Shown here: positions 2,773 to 41,920 of the stretch, in pieces | Layout of the letters: each line of letters opens with the position of its first letter | Numbering within the stretch: the stretch's first letter is position 1 | Origin: Dicyema japonicum | Taxonomy: Eukaryota; Animalia; Dicyemida | Direction: 5' to 3' | NCBI GenBank assembly: GCA_011109175.1 | Contig: RDEW01000013.1 | Coordinates: forward strand, 494,558-558,557 | DNA: 64,000 nt | Position numbers and translations under genes: made by a program | The notes under the pieces: generated by a model | Told to the model about the DNA's origin: nothing | Seen by the model: only the letters and a program-made list of their open reading frames with translations | The model's database searches: none

Positions 2773-3112
2773 ATTTATTTTTTTTATTTTATCAACCCCG
2801 GATACACAGAGAAAGAAGTTAAATTAAACAACTAATTAGTGTATCCAGTTTCCACTTCTACAGAAAGAGTTCATCCGGAATCAACATAAAAGGTAAAAGA
2901 CGTCCATAGTTGCAGTTGTGGAAACCCCTCCAGTGGAGTGGGAGAGAGCAAATGATCCTTTTTACAGAGCAAATGCCAGGCACTGGGCGCCACCTAGACA
3001 GGTGAATCACATGACGCCACTCTAATAGGAAAAGAGAAGAGAAACAGACAAACAAACATAAAACTTAGACTAATTAGCCACGCAGCACCACATGGCGCCA
3101 GGCGGCGTAAGC
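2773..3112 (-). mobile_element. Short non-autonomous Vingi-like element (5' hairpin + pseudoknot + 3' hairpin + A-rich tail), copy 1
   Basis: Colinear and highly similar to 41593-41920. Contains the GGCGTCA/TGGCGCC and TGATTC/GGATCA pseudoknot (2953-3018) and a GGATACAC/GTGTATCC terminal stem. Confidence 0.8.
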
Positions 3113-3264
3113 AATTTAATAATAATAAGAGACATGTCAACCACTCAATCAACACTAATAAAAGAAATAATTATTTTTTAAGATATGTTAATTTAATTTT
3201 TCGTCTCAGAAATTATTAAATAATTCATATAATTAAAAAACTTTTAGTTTCCTAGGGAATAATA

Positions 3265-9757: not shown

Positions 9758-11115
9758 TCATAAACTGCTAAAACAAAGACACGAATTAGTGCCTCCAAAT
9801 CCAAATGAGTTCTTTAGTCCATATCTTTTATCACAATAAGTTTGCTTCCATATTTGACTCTCATTGGCTGCATAATTAAGATCAAATCCATCATCAAGTT
9901 TATCAATATTAATAGAAGGTGGAATAATCCCTCTCTTACAAGCCATCAATGCCAATACTAATTCAGCACTTCCTGCAGCTCCGAGCATGTGACCAATCGC
10001 ACCCTTTTGAGAGGAAACTTGCAATTTCATTGAATGGGAACCAAATAATTTTTTGATAGCTCCATTTTCAATCTGATCTCCTAGTGGTGTTGATGTGGCA
10101 TGACAGTTTACATAACCAATTTGTTCAGGCATCACATTTCTTTCACCAAGAGCATATTTCATAGCCATAAATCCACCAGAAGAATCTGGATTGGGGGATG
10201 TAATATGATAAGCATCTCCTGATGCTCCATATCCTAATATTTCACCATATAATTGAGCTCTTCTATTAACAGCGTGTTCATACTCTTCAAGGACAACAAC
10301 TCCAGCACCTTCTGCTATGACAAATCCATCTCTTGACATATCAAAGGGTCTGGAGGCTTTATGAGGATTATCATTATATTTAGTGGAGAGTGCTTTTACT
10401 CTGCTAAACCCTGTCATTGTTATGGGATCTACTGGAGACTCTGTAGCTCCACAGACCATAACATTAGCCATCCCATTTGTAATGTATCGATATGCCGTGC
10501 CAATACTGTGGACTCCAGTAGCACATGCAGTGGAATAAGCCATATTTGGTCCCTACAATATATAATCGTTATACCCTCAATTTATATTTAATAGAAGCAA
10601 ATCCAGAAGTTATATTTATTATTACTTTTGGAATAAAGTGGGGGGATAACTTTCTATAACCCCCATCTTCAAAGGATGATCGAGAGGATAGAATTTCACT
10701 TATTATAGACATTGAAGACCCAATTGATATACCTTAATATTATTATTTTAATCACCTGAATAGCTCATCTGTTCTTCATTTTCAGGATTCCAATTTGCAT
10801 CTTCAAGAGCATCCTTAATGGCTTTCATTCCAAACAAAGTAGCATCGCTATAGTATCGAGTTTCACCGACTGGTCCAACAGAGGAAATGTCTAAATTACC
10901 TTCTTCTGATCCACGCGGAACAACTCCTGCAACCCGGCTGGTCAGACTAGAAAATTCTCACATAAACTCAGATTATTACTTTCTCCCGTTAATTGACTTA
11001 TTCCACACTTACCTGCTAACACCTTGGACCACACTGTTTGTAAATTATCCCCAAGACAGCAAACAATTCCCAATCCAGTTACAACAACACGCCTTCCACC
11101 GGAAAGTCTGTTCAT
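9758..11115 (-). CDS. OXSM: 3-oxoacyl-ACP synthase, mitochondrial (KAS II/FabF type)
   Basis: RRVVVTGLGIV N-terminus; catalytic STACATG, CHATSTPLGD, KGAIGHMLGAAG; terminal NSFGFGGTN. Three short introns in the 5' part. Confidence 0.93.
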
Positions 11116-12827: not shown

Positions 12828-15130
12828 CAGTAAACTCCCTTAAATTGGCGCAAATTTGTTCCTGAACTATTTGTGGCCAATTTGAGAATTTGGCCAATAT
12901 AAGAATTTGAAACACCTGGGTATTTCATTTTTTGAAATCATAACTGGCTTTAATATATTGGTTATATTTATGTATGTTGTCCAATTAAGTCGTGTCCGAC
13001 CCTTGGAGATCTCATGAACTAGTTTCCTCCACTCTCCCCGATCCGTCGCAATTTGGAGTAGCCTTGATATAGGCACTCCCGTGATGTCATCCACCATGGA
13101 TAGCCACCAAGTCCTCGATCGACCAGGTCTTCTATTCCCAGTAATATTGCTTAGCATAATGGTTCTTTCCAGGGAATCAGAGCGGACAACATGCCCAAAG
13201 AACGCCAATCTGTGTTTTACGATTTTTCCTTTTAACGAAATATCCGTCTCCATCCGTTTGAGTACATCGGTGTTTGTTATTTTGGAAGTCCAAGGGATTC
13301 TTAGTAACCTCCTCCTACACCACAGCTCAAAAGCATCAATTTTTCGTCTATCCGCCTTTTTCAGTATCCATGATTCTGCGCCGTATAGAAAAGCCGAGAA
13401 CACGATTGCATTAACCAGTCTGTATTTGGTCCTTAAGCAAATATCTTTGCTTTTCCAAATTCTATTCATTCTCTGGAAGGGATGGTAATTCGCCTCTTGA
13501 TTTCCAAGCCTCCGTCACCATTCCGATTAATTAGACATCCCAGAAAGACAACATTATCGCAACTCTCTATTTTCTCATTCCCAATTTTTAGTTCCATTAT
13601 TCCATTATTAGCAATAGTCATAATTTTGGTCTTCTTGATATTTAGCAATAAACCAAAGACGGCGCTCTCTTCTCTGAATCTTAGAATCAACTCCCTGAGG
13701 TCATCCTCTGTTTCAGCCGGTAAGGTTGTATCGTCAGCATAGCGCAAATTATTGATGTTCCTGCCTCCAATTTTAATCCCGTTATTTGATACATTATCCA
13801 ATTTAGTCATGATCATTTCGGCATAAATATTGAATAGGAGATAATAAGCATCCATGTCTTACTCCTTTACAAATTTTGAACCAATCGGTATCTCCATACA
13901 CTGTTCTAACAGTAGCTTCTTGATCCTTATAAAGAGATTTGATAAGCAATATCAGATGGGGATCGAATCCAAAATCTTTTAAAACAGACCACAGCTTGTA
14001 AACGGAATCAAAAGCTTTCCGATAGTCAATGAAGCACATGTATGCACTCTTATGTGATTCATGGGCTTTCTCCATAATCCACCGGACATTTGCTATATGG
14101 TCACGTGTGCGTCGTCCCTTCCTGAATCCTGGTTGGATATCTGGTAGAATCATTTTGGCATTTGGCATTAGCCGATGTTGCATTATCTTTATAAGTATTT
14201 TGCTGACGTGGGGAATTAAGGCTATTGTACGATAGTTTGAACAGTCCTTGCTATCCCCTTTTTTTCGGTATTGGAATAAATATAGATCTTTTCCACTCAC
14301 GTGGCCAAATACCAGTTTCCCAAATTTTTTGACATAGACTGGTGATGACTGTCACCGGTATATCCTTCAACAATTCGCTTGAGATGTTGTCAATCCCCGG
14401 TGCCTTGTTCCTCGTTAATTGCTGTGTAGCCCACACGCATTCTTCCTCAAGGATTTTATGCCCCTCACCCAACGTTGCTTCATCAACACATATGGGTGGA
14501 CACACAGTTTCTGAATATATCCGTTCCGTATATTCTCTCCAACGATTTCGGATGTTCTGTTAGCTTAGCAATTCAACACCTTCCTTGTCCTTGATTTTGC
14601 CCATCATTTTCATATTTATACATAACATAATTGAAACCTGATCTTTGAATTTTTTATATCCCCAAATCGTGTTTTGCATATGCTCTTGGACGGAATCATT
14701 ATATAATAAAGTCGATTTGCTTGTCTTTGTCGAAGGAATAAATTTTTAGATGTTTTTAATATGGACTCAAGGGAATTAAGGAATATTATTTACTGTTTTC
14801 TTGAAATTCGAATATTAAATAAATCAGAAAATCTGTGAGTGATTATTCTATTCTCGTCTCAATATCTCAAAATTTCGATTTCTTGGAAACAATTAAGCCT
14901 TGACGATTAGCTTTCGAACACGTGGTAAAAAATTTTAGTCTGAAATTTTGATTTTTTAAATAAAATAATTGAAAAAGATTAATAAAAATAAATTTATGTT
15001 TTTAATAATGTGTGGGCAATTTGAGGATTGGCCAATTCCTTAGGAAAATTGGCTTTTTTGAAACCCTGACGTGAACTTTTAGCCATAAATTGGTCAATTT
15101 AGGGGTTGGCCAATTAGAGGGACTTTACTG
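12828..15130. mobile_element. Tigger/pogo-like (Tc1/mariner) non-autonomous element with a nested RTE
   Basis: TIRs CAGTAAACTCCCTTAAATTGGC / CAGTAAAGTCCCTCTAATTGGC, TA on both flanks, subterminal TTGGCCAAT repeats. Confidence 0.85.
12972..14611 (-). mobile_element. RTE-BovB-like LINE, 5'-truncated, frameshifted RT
   Basis: KAPGIDNI, NYRTIALIPH, FIDYRKAFDSV, KIGGRNINNLRYADDTTL. BovB-like terminus GGTCGGACACGACT with an ACAT tail. TSD ATATTTAT at 12964-12971 and 14612-14619. Confidence 0.92.
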
Positions 15131-16329: not shown

Positions 16330-16446
16330 ATCAGTTGAGGTATACCATCCAGGCATAAGGAGTCTGGATGGGAAAGAGCAAATGGTTCTTTTTGTTGTAT
16401 TACTACACTGAGCACCACCACAAAAAGGGAACCACATGACGCCACG
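16330..16446 (-). ncRNA. Isolated copy of the Vingi-like 5' pseudoknot module
   Basis: GGCGTCA-TG-TGGTTC-N11-TGGTGCT-CAGTG...AAAAA-GAACCA-TTTGCTC, then hairpin CCATCCAG/CTGGATGG. Confidence 0.65.
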
Positions 16447-17049
16447 TTTCATAATTTTTTTTAATCTTGATGTCTATTGACAGGTGACATGTCTATTGAC
16501 AGGTGAAATGTAACCAGCATTGGATGGGTAACCCTGGCGGGACGCGACATATTAAGACATCAACATAATGTCTTCTTGCCATGTTCATCAGCTCAATGAT
16601 CTTGTTCTTAAATAGCCTTGGGTACAATTCTGTTGGAGGATATAAAAATTTCTGATATTTTTTTAAACACAACCAAAACGATAGACCATGACATTTTCTG
16701 TGAAGGGCCGGTTTCCATTTAGAACTTTCCTTTAGTATTCAATTAGAAGATAAGGCCTAATTAGATGTAGGACTAAAACTCTTGAAATGCATAATGAACT
16801 AAATTTTTGAAGATTACAAATTTCCAAACTAAAAGAAAACAAACCAAGTCATTAACAGAACAGGACTAATAGTTTTAGTTACGGAAGATTAAGAATTGAT
16901 GTCAACCTTGATAACATAATTAAAAATGCAGTCAACTGCTCTGTTATCTAAATTAAAAAACTGGGATTAAAGCAGTTATTATATATTTCTAAAAACTGAC
17001 ATTATCTCTTTGGTGTAGAAACAATCAACTATTATTCTTTATGAAATCA

Positions 17050-25149: not shown

Positions 25150-28100
25150 ACGAAAGGTAATTAACATCACCCATCTTTTTCGATCCATTGCCGTAGCATA
25201 TCTAGACCATCCCCATCTTAAAGGCACTTAATCTTCCTGAGATCTTCATCTAGGATTACCGGCAGTGTTGTCCTCGGCCGGCCACGGAAACGCGAAGCCT
25301 CTAAAATAAAATACTCCTACATTGCTATGTTGGTAGGAGTCTCCATCGTGTCGAGTAAGTGTCCAAACAGCCTCCATCTTGAATCAGTAATATCACATGA
25401 TATTGGCTCAGTTCCAGTTCTTTTGTATAAGATTTCGGACTGGAAGAAAGAAGTGCTCGGAGATGATTTCTGTGGAAAGAATTCAACTTTTTGAGTTTCT
25501 GCTTTGTACATGCCTATGTACCGGCATTATATAATAGGATTGGCCTCACTAAGGCATTGTATAGTCTCATTCGAGTTTTAGTGTCAAGCCCTTTTTGCAG
25601 AAGCCAAGTCTTCTTCATTTTGTTGAATGCGACGTTAGATAGTGTCTTTATTCTTGTTATATCTTCGGTGACACCGAGATGGGATCCTATTTTTTGATCT
25701 GCGTCAGTGCTCCTAGGTCCTTTCCTTACTTCTTTTTAGCTCCGTGATTTCGGTTTTGTTTGTGTTTACTTTTAATGACCATTCAGCCATTTTGTCATGC
25801 ATTTTCTCAAAAAGTGTAATTAACTCTTTTGTCATTCGAAATAAAGTCCACGTCATCCGCATATGCTATTATGCTCTTTCCTTCTCCGATATGAGGCTTC
25901 AAGTCTCGTAGAACTGCCTTCAGATAAATAATAAACAAATCTGGGATAATGGATTTCCTTGAGGGGTACCAATTGTCGTTTCAAATGTCTTCGATAAAGC
26001 TTTCCTAGTCCTGATCATCAAACTTGTGTCCTTCAAGAGTGTCCTGACCATCCTAATCGTTGAGCCGTCCAAGAAGTGCTCCAGTATTTGCAGAACTTGT
26101 TCCTGTTGACGTAATCAAAGGCCTTTGACATATCAATCCCATATTGGTTGTCGTTATTTTAAATTTTTGAACAGTCGCACTTCTCCATTTGTGGCTCCGA
26201 ATAACATCTGAGTTAATCTCCCTTTGCGGAAGCCACTTTGATAAGCCGACAGGTACGAGTCTAGGCGTCCCTCAATTCTTTGAAGCGAAATATTGGATAG
26301 TATCTTCTGCAATGTGTTGGTTAAGACCACTGGTCTTAAGTTCTCAACTTTCCCCGCTTTTTTGTTTGGTTTCTTTACTGGTCCTTCTCTAAGTAGCAAG
26401 GTGGTTCCTTTACTATACGTTTCGTTTAGAATCCAGGCAATTATCTTGTATAGTTTTTGCGTTCCATATTTAAAAATTAACTATATAAGCCATCTGAACC
26501 GGGACTCTATTGTCTTTCACTTTGAAACTTGCTGTCATCACTTCTTCCAAAGTTATTTCTTCGTCTAATTTTCCCTGATCCGTGTTAATTGTGAGTTTTT
26601 TTGCTATTTTTGATACGAATTGTGCTTCAAAATAGTCCGCTATAAGTTCTGTAACTTCTTGTTGGTTAGCAATATGTTTTCCTTCTTCATCTCGTAAAGT
26701 CAGTGTTTTCCTTAGTAGTTTTCTGATTTACCCGACAGCTTCATAAAACTTTGCATTGTATTATTATTATTACCCCCAGGATCACTGGGTCAAAAAGAAA
26801 GAAATAAAAGTTCTCATCTAACTAAGTGATCCCAGACCGACAAAGGAGAGGATGAGTCCGGCGGGGTCAAAAGTCCTGAACAGCCCTTCTCATTGGACAT
26901 GACATCGGCTCAAAATTTCTGTATGATTGTAGATATTTCGATAGTGTATGGAATAGAGGGCAGCTCCGTAAACTAGCCTCTTTTAAGAGTTTCCTTTGTA
27001 ATTAGATTAAGAAATTTTCAATGGGCTGGATTTTGTTTTCTGGTCCAATTAACCTTATTGCAGTCTCCTCGATTGCGGATAGTTTCAATGAGGAGGATCG
27101 TGAAATCTGCATTGCCCATGAAGGACTTGCATACGTCATCGTTGGTCAGATAAATTGTTCATAAATCGTGGCAAGGACACCTGTTTGGTTTTTAAGTGTT
27201 TTTGAGAGCATTTTTAAAATTCTCATTTTCTTCAGAGCAGAAGTTACTTTGTTTATAACATGTCGGATAAAGGTGAGTCCCTGATCAAAGGTAACTCCCA
27301 GAATCTTCGGTGTTTTGTTGATAGGAATAGCCTCGTTCTTCATAAAGATTTTTGGTTCGTTACATAGCTGTCTTTTGTAAGTGGTAAACAGCGTGAAAGA
27401 GGACTTTATTGCTGATGTGTCGAGTCTCCGCTTCGAAAGCCATAGTTCCAGCTTTTCAAGCATTTGTTGAGCGGACTGAGTCGCTGATTCTGTCCTTGAA
27501 GGCAAGAATGATATCGTCGGCATAGGAGAGGATTAGGCAGTTTTCATTACAGGTTTGTGGCATGTCGTTTATTTAGATATTGAAGAGTTGGGGTGATAGT
27601 GGGGAGCCTTGAGGGACTCCATTTGGGAAGTAACGAGATCTTAATGTTGTTTCAGAGTACTTGTGCTCGTCTTCCATTTAAGAAATTCCAAGCCAAAGTT
27701 TCAAGTTCGAATGAATGTTGGTTTCAAATATTTTTGTTGTAAGGAGTTTCCTAAGGACTGAGTCGAACGCTTTTGTGATCTCCACGGATAGAATCCGTGT
27801 TGGGTCGGAGGTATTGAGATTGAGTCTTGTATTTTTTCCAAAACAAGCCTTTCAAGTATCTTTGAGACCGGACTTAGGATAGATATTGGGCGGTAGGAAG
27901 ATGGTTCATCTTTTGGTTTGTTGGGTTTTTAAATAGGTCTGATTAGAGACTTCTTCCATATTTCAGGGATTGTATTTGTGTTAATGGATAGGTTGAAGAT
28001 ATAGGCTAATAGTTCCAGGGTTCGATGGCCTAGGTGCTTCAGTTCACATGTGGTTATGTTGTCTGGTCCTTTGGCCTCTGAGTTGTTGGCTTTGGGTATG

Positions 28101-30305
28101 GCTCTGCGAACATCCTGACTAGTAAATAGGGTCCAGTCATCGGAGCGTTTCGGTTCAATTTTTTTCAGGAATACTTGGTGTTCTTTTGAAAACTTCTTTG
28201 TTTTAGATAGACGCATAATATTTTTCAGAGTGTCTGGTTTTATGTAGACTTCGACTTTTCTCTCTGGGGAGGATCTTTTGATGTTCTTGATCCACTTCCA
28301 CACTATCTGCATTGGGGGGTTTTGCAGAGAGCCTTTGATAGTCTCGTCCATCTATTTGAATTTTCTTCCTTTATGTTGTTGTCGATCTCTTTGTTCAATT
28401 TTTGTATTTTTTTAATGTTCTCTTCTGTTGGCGATTTTACCATCTTTAGATTATTTCGTTCTCTGATCAGATGTTTCGTCGTTGTGTTGAAAAGTTTTGA
28501 TAATGTAGGTTGTCTCCCCATATGAATGTACTTCCTTTTCGCAGCGTTTATGGTTGTGAACTATTTACTAATTGTTCGACGGAGGGAGGAGTGGGAAAAT
28601 TTAATAGTCCAATACAATTATCGACGTAATCCTTAAATCTTTTCCAATTCGCAAGGCTGTAATTAGTTATCTTTGGACATTGTCCTTTTATCCGTTACCT
28701 CGTTTTGACCTCCAAAAATATTGGATTGTGGTCACTCCTGGGGTTATATTTCACTGACCAGTAAATAAGAGGGGTCAAGGACGGTGATGACAGTGAGATG
28801 TTCGCATTGAAGTCACCACAGATAATCACATCCTTCAGTGATGCGAGTGGAGTGAGTCTGGAAGCACTGGACGAGCAGAAACTCAACGGTGGGAGATATG
28901 CGTTGACAAGTATTATTGATAGTCTTGGGAATCCTACTTTGGTAACCAAAAGTCGAGATTTCCACATCCTTTAAGCATAGTGTAGGCACTGTTAGTTAAG
29001 TTCTCAAACGGAATGCCGCGAAAAACCCCCACCAAGTTTGCAAATTCTGTTACGGCGAATTACTGTGAATCCCGGAAATACTGGTGTTGAGTTCTTCGTG
29101 AAAAATTAGACTCTTGAATTAGCAACATGTCGATGTGATTTTCTTTCACAAATGTCCGAAGTTCGAGTATCTTGTTCTTGATTTCATTTACGTTGAGTTG
29201 GACTATTCTGACTGGTCCAGGGTTTGCCTTAATGTTTCCGAAGCGGCGCAGGTCTTCCTTATTAGTCCACCTGTGAAGATAGAGGAAAAAGTGGTTCTTT
29301 TTTTCTAATGCCACCGCGTCGTCGGCGAGCCACATGACATTTTTTTACTTCGCATTGTTTTTAATGCCTTCGATTTTCTATATTTTAGTTATTGTTTCGT
29401 TCTTTAATATTTAACGTGCAGCTTTTCTTATTTTCTAATTGATGACTGTTCTTTCCTTTGTACTGCTGTTTCGTATTTTTGTCATCTGTATTTATACATT
29501 TTTGCTGATTAGCAAAGAGTTTCAAAGCGGTTCTTTCTTCAGTGGGTGTGTTAGTTACATAGTCCTCTTTTAGATATATATCCACAGCAAACATGGTCTT
29601 ATGTTTGACCAAGGTCCAATTTGCGGTGCCAAATCTATTGATATTTCTTCCAATCCCTCATCCAGGTATTTTCTAAATTCCTTTCCCTGGATAGTATTGT
29701 TCTTTAGGTGGTCTATAACGTATCCCTTCCCCCGAAGTTTTGTGTGTCCATTGCACTTTCTTTTCATCTCTTGCAAACCCATAAGTTTCTTTAAGGACAT
29801 TTTGGCAATAACCATCTTGTGATCGTTGTCAATTATAGACCCTCCATAAGCACGGGCATCAGTGACAATACCGTAGTCTTTTTGTCTGCAAATAATGCGC
29901 AATGCTTCCGTCAGACTTGGTTCTATTGCCTGACCAAATTGTCCTGTGTTTTGCCGAGTGCATAAATGCCGGGTTACAAAGGAATAGGTTATTTTCCTTG
30001 ACAAAAACTGGCTAACAAGGTTCTTGCAATGTTTTTTTTCCTCTTCCATGTCTTCCAATGAATGATTTTTCAATAGTGATTCGATTTCCAACTTTTGCAT
30101 TAAGATCACCAAATTGGAATATGAATACAACTCTGGGATTTGGGGAATCTCTAAACGGGAAATGGACCTCTTTGATCCATCCACTATGTGGAGCATATGC
30201 GTTAATAATAGTAAGATAACTTTTCGGAAAATTATGATCGTCCAATGCTATTTGTAAAATCCCAATCCTTTCATTGATAGTCCAGTGACAGTATATGTGC
30301 TTGAC
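25150..30305 (-). mobile_element. RTE-clade LINE (APE+RT, degraded) split by a full-length Vingi-like insertion
   Basis: APE: INAYAPH, GDLNAKVG, DNDHKMV. RT: ENLRPVVL, QSGFRKGR, GTPQG, YADD, WRLFGH. The reading continues across the TSD at 26748-26759 / 29347-29358. Confidence 0.88.
26760..29346 (-). mobile_element. Full-length (both ends intact) Ingi/Vingi-like LINE: 5' pseudoknot with ATG, 2A-like peptide, APE, RT, 3' hairpin, (TAA)n
   Basis: 12-bp TSD ACTTTGCATTGT / ACTTCGCATTGT. ORF start MWL...FGNIKANPGP-VRIVQLN...LIQES, then ICGDFNA, SDHNPI, AKGPDNI, SYRPIS, GVPQGSPLSP, SYADD, PKILGVTFD. No ORF1 and no RNase H visible. Confidence 0.9.
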
Positions 30306-41592: not shown

Positions 41593-41920
41593 TAGCCGCG
41601 TGGCGCCATGTGGTGCTTCGTGGCTAATTGATTGAAGTTTCTGTTTTGTTCGTCTGTTCCTCCTCTCTCTTCCTATTAGAGTGGCGTCATGTGATCCACC
41701 TGTCTAGGTGGCGCCCAGTGCCAGGCCGGCACGAAAAAGGATCATTTGCTCTCCCCCACTCCACTGGAGGGGTTTCCACAACTGCAACCATGGACGTCTT
41801 TTACCCTTTATGCTGATTTCGGATGGACTCTATCTGTAGAAGTGGAAACTGGATACATTTAATTAGTTGTTTACTTTAACTTCTTTCTCGGTGTATCCGG
41901 GGTTAATAAATAAAATAAAT
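41593..41920 (+). mobile_element. Short non-autonomous Vingi-like element, copy 2
   Basis: 5' hairpin TAGCCGCG/CGTGGCTA, pseudoknot 41683-41744, 3' stem CTGGATACATT/GGTGTATCCGG, GGGG, TAAA tail. Confidence 0.8.

Follow-up and report, generated by a model that had tools for sequence, protein, structure and literature searches.

A start codon inside an HDV-type double pseudoknot at the 5′ ends of 2A-bearing LINEs and within related SINEs in Dicyema japonicum

Introduction

What might an RNA fold of the hepatitis delta virus (HDV) type do at the head of a retrotransposon when the start codon lies inside the fold and a 2A-like peptide follows in frame? This question is raised by a decayed long interspersed nuclear element (LINE) in a 64,000-nt stretch of Dicyema japonicum DNA (positions 494,558 to 558,557 of contig RDEW01000013.1, assembly GCA_011109175.1), which was analysed at its full length and is called the window below; all coordinates are window positions. 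A first-pass annotation had placed a LINE 5′ module at 29213–29358 and had proposed that it is either a non-canonical ribozyme or an ex-ribozyme fold put to another use. We found it to be the 5′ RNA module shared by a group of LINEs with one open reading frame (ORF) and a 2A motif, and by short interspersed nuclear elements (SINEs) derived from them. The module has an HDV-type fold with covarying helices, a frame that runs from the AUG in the fold into the 2A, and nucleotides that are themselves under constraint. Judged from its sequence, it is probably, though by no means surely, an RNA element that acts in cis at the 5′ end, is built on an HDV scaffold and is non-cleaving or at most poorly cleaving.

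Results

The LINE begins with a nested double pseudoknot

The module of the window LINE, which is assigned to family A, is read on the minus strand (Table 1). As RNA, the decayed LINE starts at about 29341 and runs AATGTCA-TG-TGGCTC-GCC-GACGACGC-GGT-GGCATT-AG-AAAAAAA-GAACCA to its end at 29292. The strand order of this copy, P1, AUG, P2, P3, P1′, A-rich linker and P2′, is that of the HDV-type nested double pseudoknot, with P1 formed by AATGTC(A) and GGCATT, P3 by GCC and GGT, and P2 by TGGCTC and GAACCA with a single C·A mismatch. Redrawing the helices on the minus strand at 29341–29292 reproduced the layout and coordinates that had been described for the module. The 5′ end of the family was set by about 28 copies with unrelated flanks, which start with (A)AATGTCA, the base of P1; the window copy is ~84% identical to the other family-A copies, and those are ~91% identical among themselves. 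In the decayed LINE copies of the window, Pfam matched fragments of the apurinic/apyrimidinic endonuclease (APE) and of RVT_1, a reverse-transcriptase (RT) domain, and RNase H was not found; the label Vingi-like, given to the LINE in the first-pass annotation, is provisional. The target-site duplication that had been reported around the LINE was not recovered, as no repeat of the 5′ flank of the family-A copy was present within 9 kb downstream, even with mismatches allowed.

The helices covary among at least eight sequence types

Using the loose pattern GTCATGTG-N25-85-AAAAGRAYCA, 850 matches were obtained in a genome search space of 67.5 Mb, and the reversed pattern, used as a control, gave 0. 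The matches sorted into at least eight sequence types, and GTCATGTG was kept in every one of them, non-coding SINEs included. Copies within a type are clonal, and independent support is therefore given by the differences between types and not by copy number. A covariance model whose structure comprised only P1 and P3 was used for an alignment of 52 matches from 43 sources, in which 93.4% of the P1, P2 and P3 cells were paired, against 34–58% when the 3′ partners were slid by 1–3 columns. Changes on both sides were seen in 7 of the 15 pairs, and the observed covariation score was reached by none of 500 column shuffles. P2 was paired in 95.8% although it lay outside the structure of the model, and alternates among TGGTTC/GAACCA, TGATCC/GGATCA and TGGTCT/GGACCA. 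P1 was recovered de novo by RNAalifold, and compensated changes separate family A from the other types at the outer 2–3 P1 positions. The earlier statement that pairing is preserved in differing sequence thus held against both the slid and the shuffled controls. In a whole-genome search with the covariance model, only near copies of the seed were found among the 150 that were scored of ~36,000 candidates.

Two further helices vary in sequence and keep their pairing. Between P1′ and the A-run, each of eight types carries a P4 hairpin of unrelated sequence (GTGCC/GGCAC, GTGTA/TACAC, GGATATAGT/ACTATATCT, GATACA/TGTATC, CTGTGGA/TTCACAG, GGGTGCA/TGCACCT, GGGC/GCCC and TTGTGAA/TTCACAA). About 10 nt after P2′, in the coding region of the leader, stands another hairpin that differs in sequence by family, for example CCATCCAG/CTGGATGG, TCCGAAG/CTTCGGA and CCAG/CTGG (e.g. 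L036, L049, L091; window ~29255–29290, minus strand).

The AUG in the fold leads in frame to a 2A motif

When P3 is drawn with 3 bp, as in HDV, the P1 strand ends in the A of the shared ATG (ATG2), which is left unpaired, and the AUG forms J1/2; family A has a second AUG, ATG1, inside P1 and five bases upstream of ATG2. The AUG thus lies inside the fold, as had been noticed. Among 27 family-A copies read, the 14 with a 10-nt linker have ATG1 in frame with the 2A and the six with a 9-nt linker, including the window copy, have ATG2 in frame. In 20 copies, therefore, either ATG1 or ATG2 is an in-frame start for the 2A, with a 5′ untranslated part of 1–6 nt. The A-run of the linker has 7 or 8 bases (L002–L030; window 29298–29306), and this one-base difference selects the in-frame ATG of the overlapping ATGTCATG; it could reflect RT slippage or two subfamilies.

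In four LINE families (A, T2, T3 and T5), the ATG of the fold opens a leader of 41–63 residues followed by a canonical 2A (GD[VI]ExNPGP), and the endonuclease comes next in A, T2 and T3; the ATG is thus in frame with the 2A and APE in young copies, the check that the first-pass annotation had called for. The C-terminal motif D[V/I]ExNPG|P is present in the young copies as GDVEANPGP (A), GDIEQNPGP (T2), GDVEQNPGP (T3 and the Octopus sinensis copy described below) and GDIELN.. (T5), and would be a skipping peptide. For the window copy, the claim that the ATG at 29335 is in frame with GNIKANPGP and then APE stood as to the frame, which is open for 91 codons, with the 2A at 29239–29213. The motif had been described as two G-to-A changes away from its consensus; compared with its own family (GDVEANPGP), it differs by three.

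Constraint on the leader falls on its nucleotides

Synonymous change was compared between leader codons 1–40 and the endonuclease. The proportion of synonymous differences (pS) was 0.22 in the leader and 0.68 in the endonuclease between T3 and the O. sinensis copy (Fisher p 4e-6), and 0.37 and 0.82, respectively, between T2 and T3 (Fisher p 7e-6), which means that synonymous change in the leader is 2–3 times below that in the endonuclease. The proportion of non-synonymous differences (pN) in the T2–T3 leader was 0.33, about equal to pS. This combination places the constraint on the nucleotides and not on the leader peptide. It is the pattern to be expected when an RNA or DNA element dictates the leader sequence, with its translation as a by-product, and this would be the reason why a 2A stands at exactly that place. 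The idea that the 2A would discard a peptide read through the structure is thus strengthened by the synonymous suppression (p ~1e-5).

SINEs carry both the fold and the LINE 3′ hairpin

Three further places in the window, at 16443–16383 (minus strand), 41683–41744 (plus strand) and 3018–2953 (minus strand), share the layout with different helices, in agreement with the earlier description. The first belongs to a second LINE family, with RT fragments downstream at 13466–14300; from outside, its 5′ end is adjoined by a direct repeat, tgtctattgacaggtga, which occurs twice at 16465–16510 (plus strand).

The other two lie in SINE-like elements, which are built from a head of ~105 nt, then the pseudoknot, then a tail that ends in a hairpin and TAATAAATAAAA. 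The head opens with a 13-bp hairpin, GCCGCGTGGCGCC/GGTGCTTCGTGGC, with the loop ATGT, which holds a second GGCGCCATGTGG; every one of the 15 aligned SINE copies retained this head upstream of the module, and it matched no tRNA and no Rfam family. A second SINE type (L042, L053) has the common head with a different pseudoknot. In the SINE type, TGA stands directly after the ATG. These SINEs are derived from the 2A LINE group and carry the LINE 3′ hairpin as well as the fold; because both are copied, a role in trans-mobilisation, through protein binding or ribosome docking, is pointed to.

Modules were also seen head to head within ~100–220 bp, at L043/L044 (SINE type against LINE type 2) and at L076 (type 2 against a type 7-like module), which suggests nested or adjacent insertions at the 5′ ends of the elements.

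A similar module in an Octopus sinensis gene model

The cross-species comparison comprised one sequence, the NCBI gene model LOC115229065 of O. sinensis (377 aa), whose start is the ATG of the fold; at the DNA level it has a module of the T3 kind in which a change in P4 is compensated. Word-index protein searches returned it and no other model, and in an exhaustive profile search with the leader plus 2A it was the only match over the leader, the others being 2A-only or unrelated repeats. A LINE ORF on L092, an ENA metagenome contig (130–410), combines a PHD-like zinc finger with the 2A LAGDVEENPGP and begins ...CGTCATGG; P1 could not be drawn on it, and the likeness may reflect either distant relationship to the module or coincidence.

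The HDV core is not conserved and most families keep bases upstream of P1

No Rfam family reached its gathering score in the window, and when family A, the SINE type and T3 were searched at E≤10, no HDV-type model matched. L3 differs by family (GACGACGC, TGTCTA, TTTTGT, GTTTCT, GTTTTT and TTGTCT), and the bases after P1′ vary among CA, CGG, AA and TG, so that a P1.1 of 1–2 bp can be drawn in most families at no fixed position. The HDV core positions in L3 and P1.1 are thus not conserved across families, and the lack of the canonical signature noted earlier was borne out by both lines of evidence. Family A has no P4 and, in any copy, no C in its linker, which reads TT(T/A)G-A7-8; this is a trait of the family and not the decay of a single copy.

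Young T2 copies have TT(TT)CTCGT before GGCGTCA, a leader of 7–9 nt upstream of P1; nearly all of the 30 T3 copies have (T)TAGCGT or a one-base variant before GCGTCA, a leader of 6–7 nt; and the O. sinensis copy has TTTAGCGC upstream of P1. Alternative P1 registers that would absorb the conserved upstream 'CGT' were sought by inspection, and none was found. Bases upstream of P1 are thus inherited in T2, T3 and the SINEs, and an RNA cut at the base of P1 could not have transmitted them. The anatomy of the insertions therefore leans against cutting at that site, and self-cleavage of the module appears doubtful. A look-up of sequencing runs for the organism gave four, all from one study, of unrecorded kind and kept as contigs, with none listed as RNA.

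Table 1. Features of the module, its copies and the translated leaders (window positions)
Feature	Position	Strand	Sequence or remark
P1 5′	29341–29335	−	AATGTCA
J1/2	29334–29333	−	TG
P2 5′	29332–29327	−	TGGCTC
P3 5′	29326–29324	−	GCC
L3	29323–29316	−	GACGACGC
P3 3′	29315–29313	−	GGT
P1 3′	29312–29307	−	GGCATT; 29313 alternatively counted with P1
Linker	29306–29298	−	AG + A7
P2 3′	29297–29292	−	GAACCA
Double-pseudoknot module, family A	29292–29341	−	Without P4
ATG1	29338–29340	−	Element bases 2–4, inside P1; out of frame in the window copy
ATG2, common to all families	29333–29335	−	Last P1 base + J1/2; in frame with 2A and endonuclease (9-nt linker)
Open frame from ATG2	29060–29335	−	91 codons; leader, 2A, endonuclease start; ended by a stop in the decayed copy
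Decayed 2A	29213–29239	−	GNIKANPGP; other family copies GDVEANPGP
Endonuclease fragment	28695–28967	−	Exo_endo_phos_2, E 1.5e-4, below Pfam's cut-off
Reverse-transcriptase fragment	26154–26399	−	RVT_1, E 7e-4, below Pfam's cut-off
Module in second LINE family (type 2, older subfamily)	16383–16443	−	P1 GGCGTCA/TGGTGCT, P2 TGGTTC/GAACCA, P4 hairpin
Module within SINE-like element	41683–41744	+	P2 TGATCC/GGATCA, P4 GTGCC/GGCAC, J4/2 CGAAAAA
SINE-type module, second copy	2953–3018	−	P4 interrupted by an insertion
SINE-like element, ~350 bp	~41593–41920	+	Also loci L034–L059
SINE-like element, ~350 bp	~2820–3125	−	Also loci L034–L059
Family A leader + 2A			MWLADDVVAFEKKNHTFPYLHGWTNKEGLRRCGDVEANPGP, then endonuclease; translated from the shared ATG
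Family T2 leader + 2A			MWFTFCGG...LLLSGDIEQNPGP, then endonuclease; translated from the shared ATG
Family T3 leader + 2A			MWFTVSGG...LLTSGDVEQNPGP, then endonuclease; translated from the shared ATG
Family T5 leader + 2A			...LLLSGDIELN, then broken; translated from the shared ATG

Apart from these elements, an open frame of 261 aa at 9758–10543 (minus strand) contains the N- and C-terminal domains of a beta-ketoacyl synthase (E 7e-22 and 4e-35) and probably represents one exon of a gene for a fatty-acid or polyketide synthase.

Discussion

A cis-acting 5′ element that cleaves itself poorly or not at all would work as follows. The fold would descend from, or converge on, the HDV-like ribozyme that heads Ingi-clade elements (Pr77/L1TcRz of L1Tc). 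The pseudoknot and the downstream hairpin are all contained in the first ~40 codons, and the 5′ leader before the AUG measures 1–15 nt. The fold would position the AUG so that initiation needs no scanning, offer a binding site to the protein of the element, or do both. An AUG so close to the RNA end (1–15 nt) and enclosed in a stable pseudoknot is unlikely to be served by ordinary scanning in eukaryotic initiation. The leader peptide would be a by-product of translating the structure, and the 2A directly after it would release the endonuclease–RT protein from the leader. The SINEs, in turn, would copy the fold because of its AUG-placing or protein-binding role. We thus infer a role in translation or protein binding, with weak or absent cleavage. 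A bolder form of the proposal, which is speculative and which we think rather improbable, makes the module a minimal 5′-terminal ribosome-docking device on the HDV scaffold, whose catalysis was lost or never needed; the AUG, held in J1/2 or at bases 2–4 of the RNA, would be presented directly to the ribosome, without scanning, the 2A would have been recruited to shed the leader, and the SINEs would copy the fold with its AUG-UGA in order to reach the same ribosome or the LINE protein.

These proposals have to be weighed against an active HDV-like ribozyme with a non-canonical core, which we consider unlikely and yet a serious contender. Such a ribozyme would cut at the base of P1, trimming transcripts that arise by read-through or from a promoter, and would afterwards promote translation of the RNA in its uncapped state, in the way reported for R2, RTE and L1Tc. 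All five HDV helices (P1, P1.1, P2, P3 and P4) can be drawn, with covariation in four, HDV-like ribozymes remain tolerant of extensive changes in the core and of a missing P4 (PMC3774820), and L1Tc of a related clade has an active ribozyme followed by a 2A (PMC3185411). Several observations weigh directly against the cis-acting, poorly cleaving element that we prefer: nearly all families with a P4 have a C 1–4 nt ahead of the A-run, although in some it can be paired as the last bp of P4; J4/2 of the SINE type reads C-G-A-A-A-A-A, like the C-G-A-A of HDV; G1·U or G1-C is common at the base of P1; and family-A copies start exactly at the base of P1, as in ribozyme-headed LINEs. The topology, moreover, is known so far mainly from self-cleaving ribozymes, and uncleaved RNAs could serve as templates for retrotransposition with the cleaved ones being translated. 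On the other side, the linker of family A lacks the C, and an R2 ribozyme with C-to-A and G-to-A changes at conserved active-site positions was inactive in vitro (PMC3774820); L3 and P1.1 are unconserved, Rfam gave no match, and between 5 and 105 nt upstream of the cut site were inherited by T2, T3 and the SINEs. The J4/2 catalytic C that the first-pass annotation had reported missing is thus absent from family A, whereas the P4-bearing families have a candidate for it. Of its broader suggestion, a non-canonical ribozyme or an ex-ribozyme fold, the HDV topology is upheld by the compensatory changes, whereas the anatomy of the insertions leans against a cut at the base of P1.

The main constraint might instead act on DNA, the first 20–80 bp being an internal promoter like Pr77 of L1Tc and the RNA fold being secondary, an explanation that we judge improbable. 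The invariance of GTCATGTG in all families, non-coding SINEs included, favours it, and the SINE head starts with a second GGCGCCATGTGG. The 5′ ends of full-length copies are sharp, 0–9 nt upstream of P1. GTCATGTG (e.g. window 29331–29338, minus strand, and 41686–41693, plus strand) contains CATGTG, which we take to be an E-box, and TCATGTG presumably resembles the 'M-box' of MITF/TFE; the CGTCA of CGT-GCGTCA is likewise assumed to resemble half of a cyclic AMP response element (CRE). Protein–DNA recognition would not be expected to yield compensatory changes on both sides of P1, P2 and P3, or P4 helices that differ completely. A promoter role may exist alongside the fold yet cannot account for it; Pr77 itself is both promoter and ribozyme (PMC3185411, PMC4748587). 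To a chance resemblance, or to shared ancestry without structure, we give hardly any credence: the clonality of copies within a family does mean that raw copy numbers overstate the support, but the compensatory changes occur between the at least eight types, the slid controls fell far below the observed pairing, and the reversed pattern gave no match at all.

The closest known system to the module, which we continue to read as a cis-acting and poorly cleaving or non-cleaving element, is Pr77/L1TcRz with L1Tc2A in L1Tc of Trypanosoma cruzi and the ingi clade (PMC3185411, PMC4035085, PMC5814959). In L1Tc, which belongs to the related Ingi clade, the active HDV-like ribozyme occupies the first 77 nt and the 2A lies behind it (PMC3185411, PMC5814959). 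In both systems, the first ~77 nt of a single-ORF APE-type LINE form an HDV-like double pseudoknot, a 2A stands just downstream in frame with the endonuclease, and non-autonomous derivatives (NARTc and SIDER in L1Tc) bear the 5′ hallmark, sometimes internally or in duplicate. Unlike L1Tc, the present elements have a metazoan (cephalopod-type) host, and the likeness to Pr77 is one of layout; the AUG lies inside the fold with a leader of 1–15 nt, L3 and P1.1 are unconserved, one family lacks both P4 and the C, bases upstream of P1 are kept in most families, and any cleavage or promoter activity of the module is hypothetical.

Work on R2-type HDV-like ribozymes (a 2011 study as cited in PMC6765202; PMC3774820) describes the same helix order, a P1 of 6–7 bp, a variable or absent P4 and a location at the LINE 5′ end, and proposes roles in translation initiation and in binding of the element's protein. 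In R2, the element protein binds a 5′ pseudoknot, HDV-like ribozymes act like internal ribosome entry sites, and those of R2 and L1Tc were reported to promote initiation (PMC6765202). The R2 core differs in keeping the catalytic C and four other fixed positions (PMC3774820), which are not kept here, where, furthermore, the fold is translated and no Rfam model matches.

The 2A resembles that of ORF2 in elements without long terminal repeats (Odon et al. 2013, PMC3708506), Ingi-1_AC of Aplysia among them, in which D[V/I]ExNPGP lies 40–80 aa from the N-terminus and before the endonuclease in single-ORF mollusc elements. The 2A of Ingi-1_AC was highly active, and no 2A was found in Vingi elements in that study (PMC3708506). 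Neither this study nor its companion review (PMC3894237) links the 2A to a 5′ RNA structure, and the word 'ribozyme' occurs in neither. The SINEs resemble SINEs and bipartite non-autonomous LINEs that reuse Vingi or RTE 5′ ends, with ~70 nt of the LINE 5′ end in mid-SINE and the LINE 3′ tail at the end (Kojima 2018, PMC5786205); beyond these, the reused piece is here a covarying double pseudoknot. A ribozyme in the LINE 5′ end reused by a SINE would, as Kojima pointed out, cut off the SINE head (PMC5786205). New here are the cephalopod-type host, the AUG inside the fold of a nearly leaderless RNA, a natural family without P4 and C, and the measured synonymous suppression in the leader.

HDV-like ribozymes at LINE 5′ ends and N-terminal 2A peptides have been described separately, and together only for the trypanosome L1Tc. 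Here they are joined in the genome of an animal. The hundreds of copies, which belong to several diverged families, supply natural covariation data and a natural series of variants of the core: some have P4 and the C, some lack both, and some are set within SINEs. The module thus allows us to ask whether the HDV fold does non-catalytic work, be it in translation start or in protein binding, why the 2A sits where it is found in single-ORF LINEs, and which part of a LINE 5′ end a SINE must copy.

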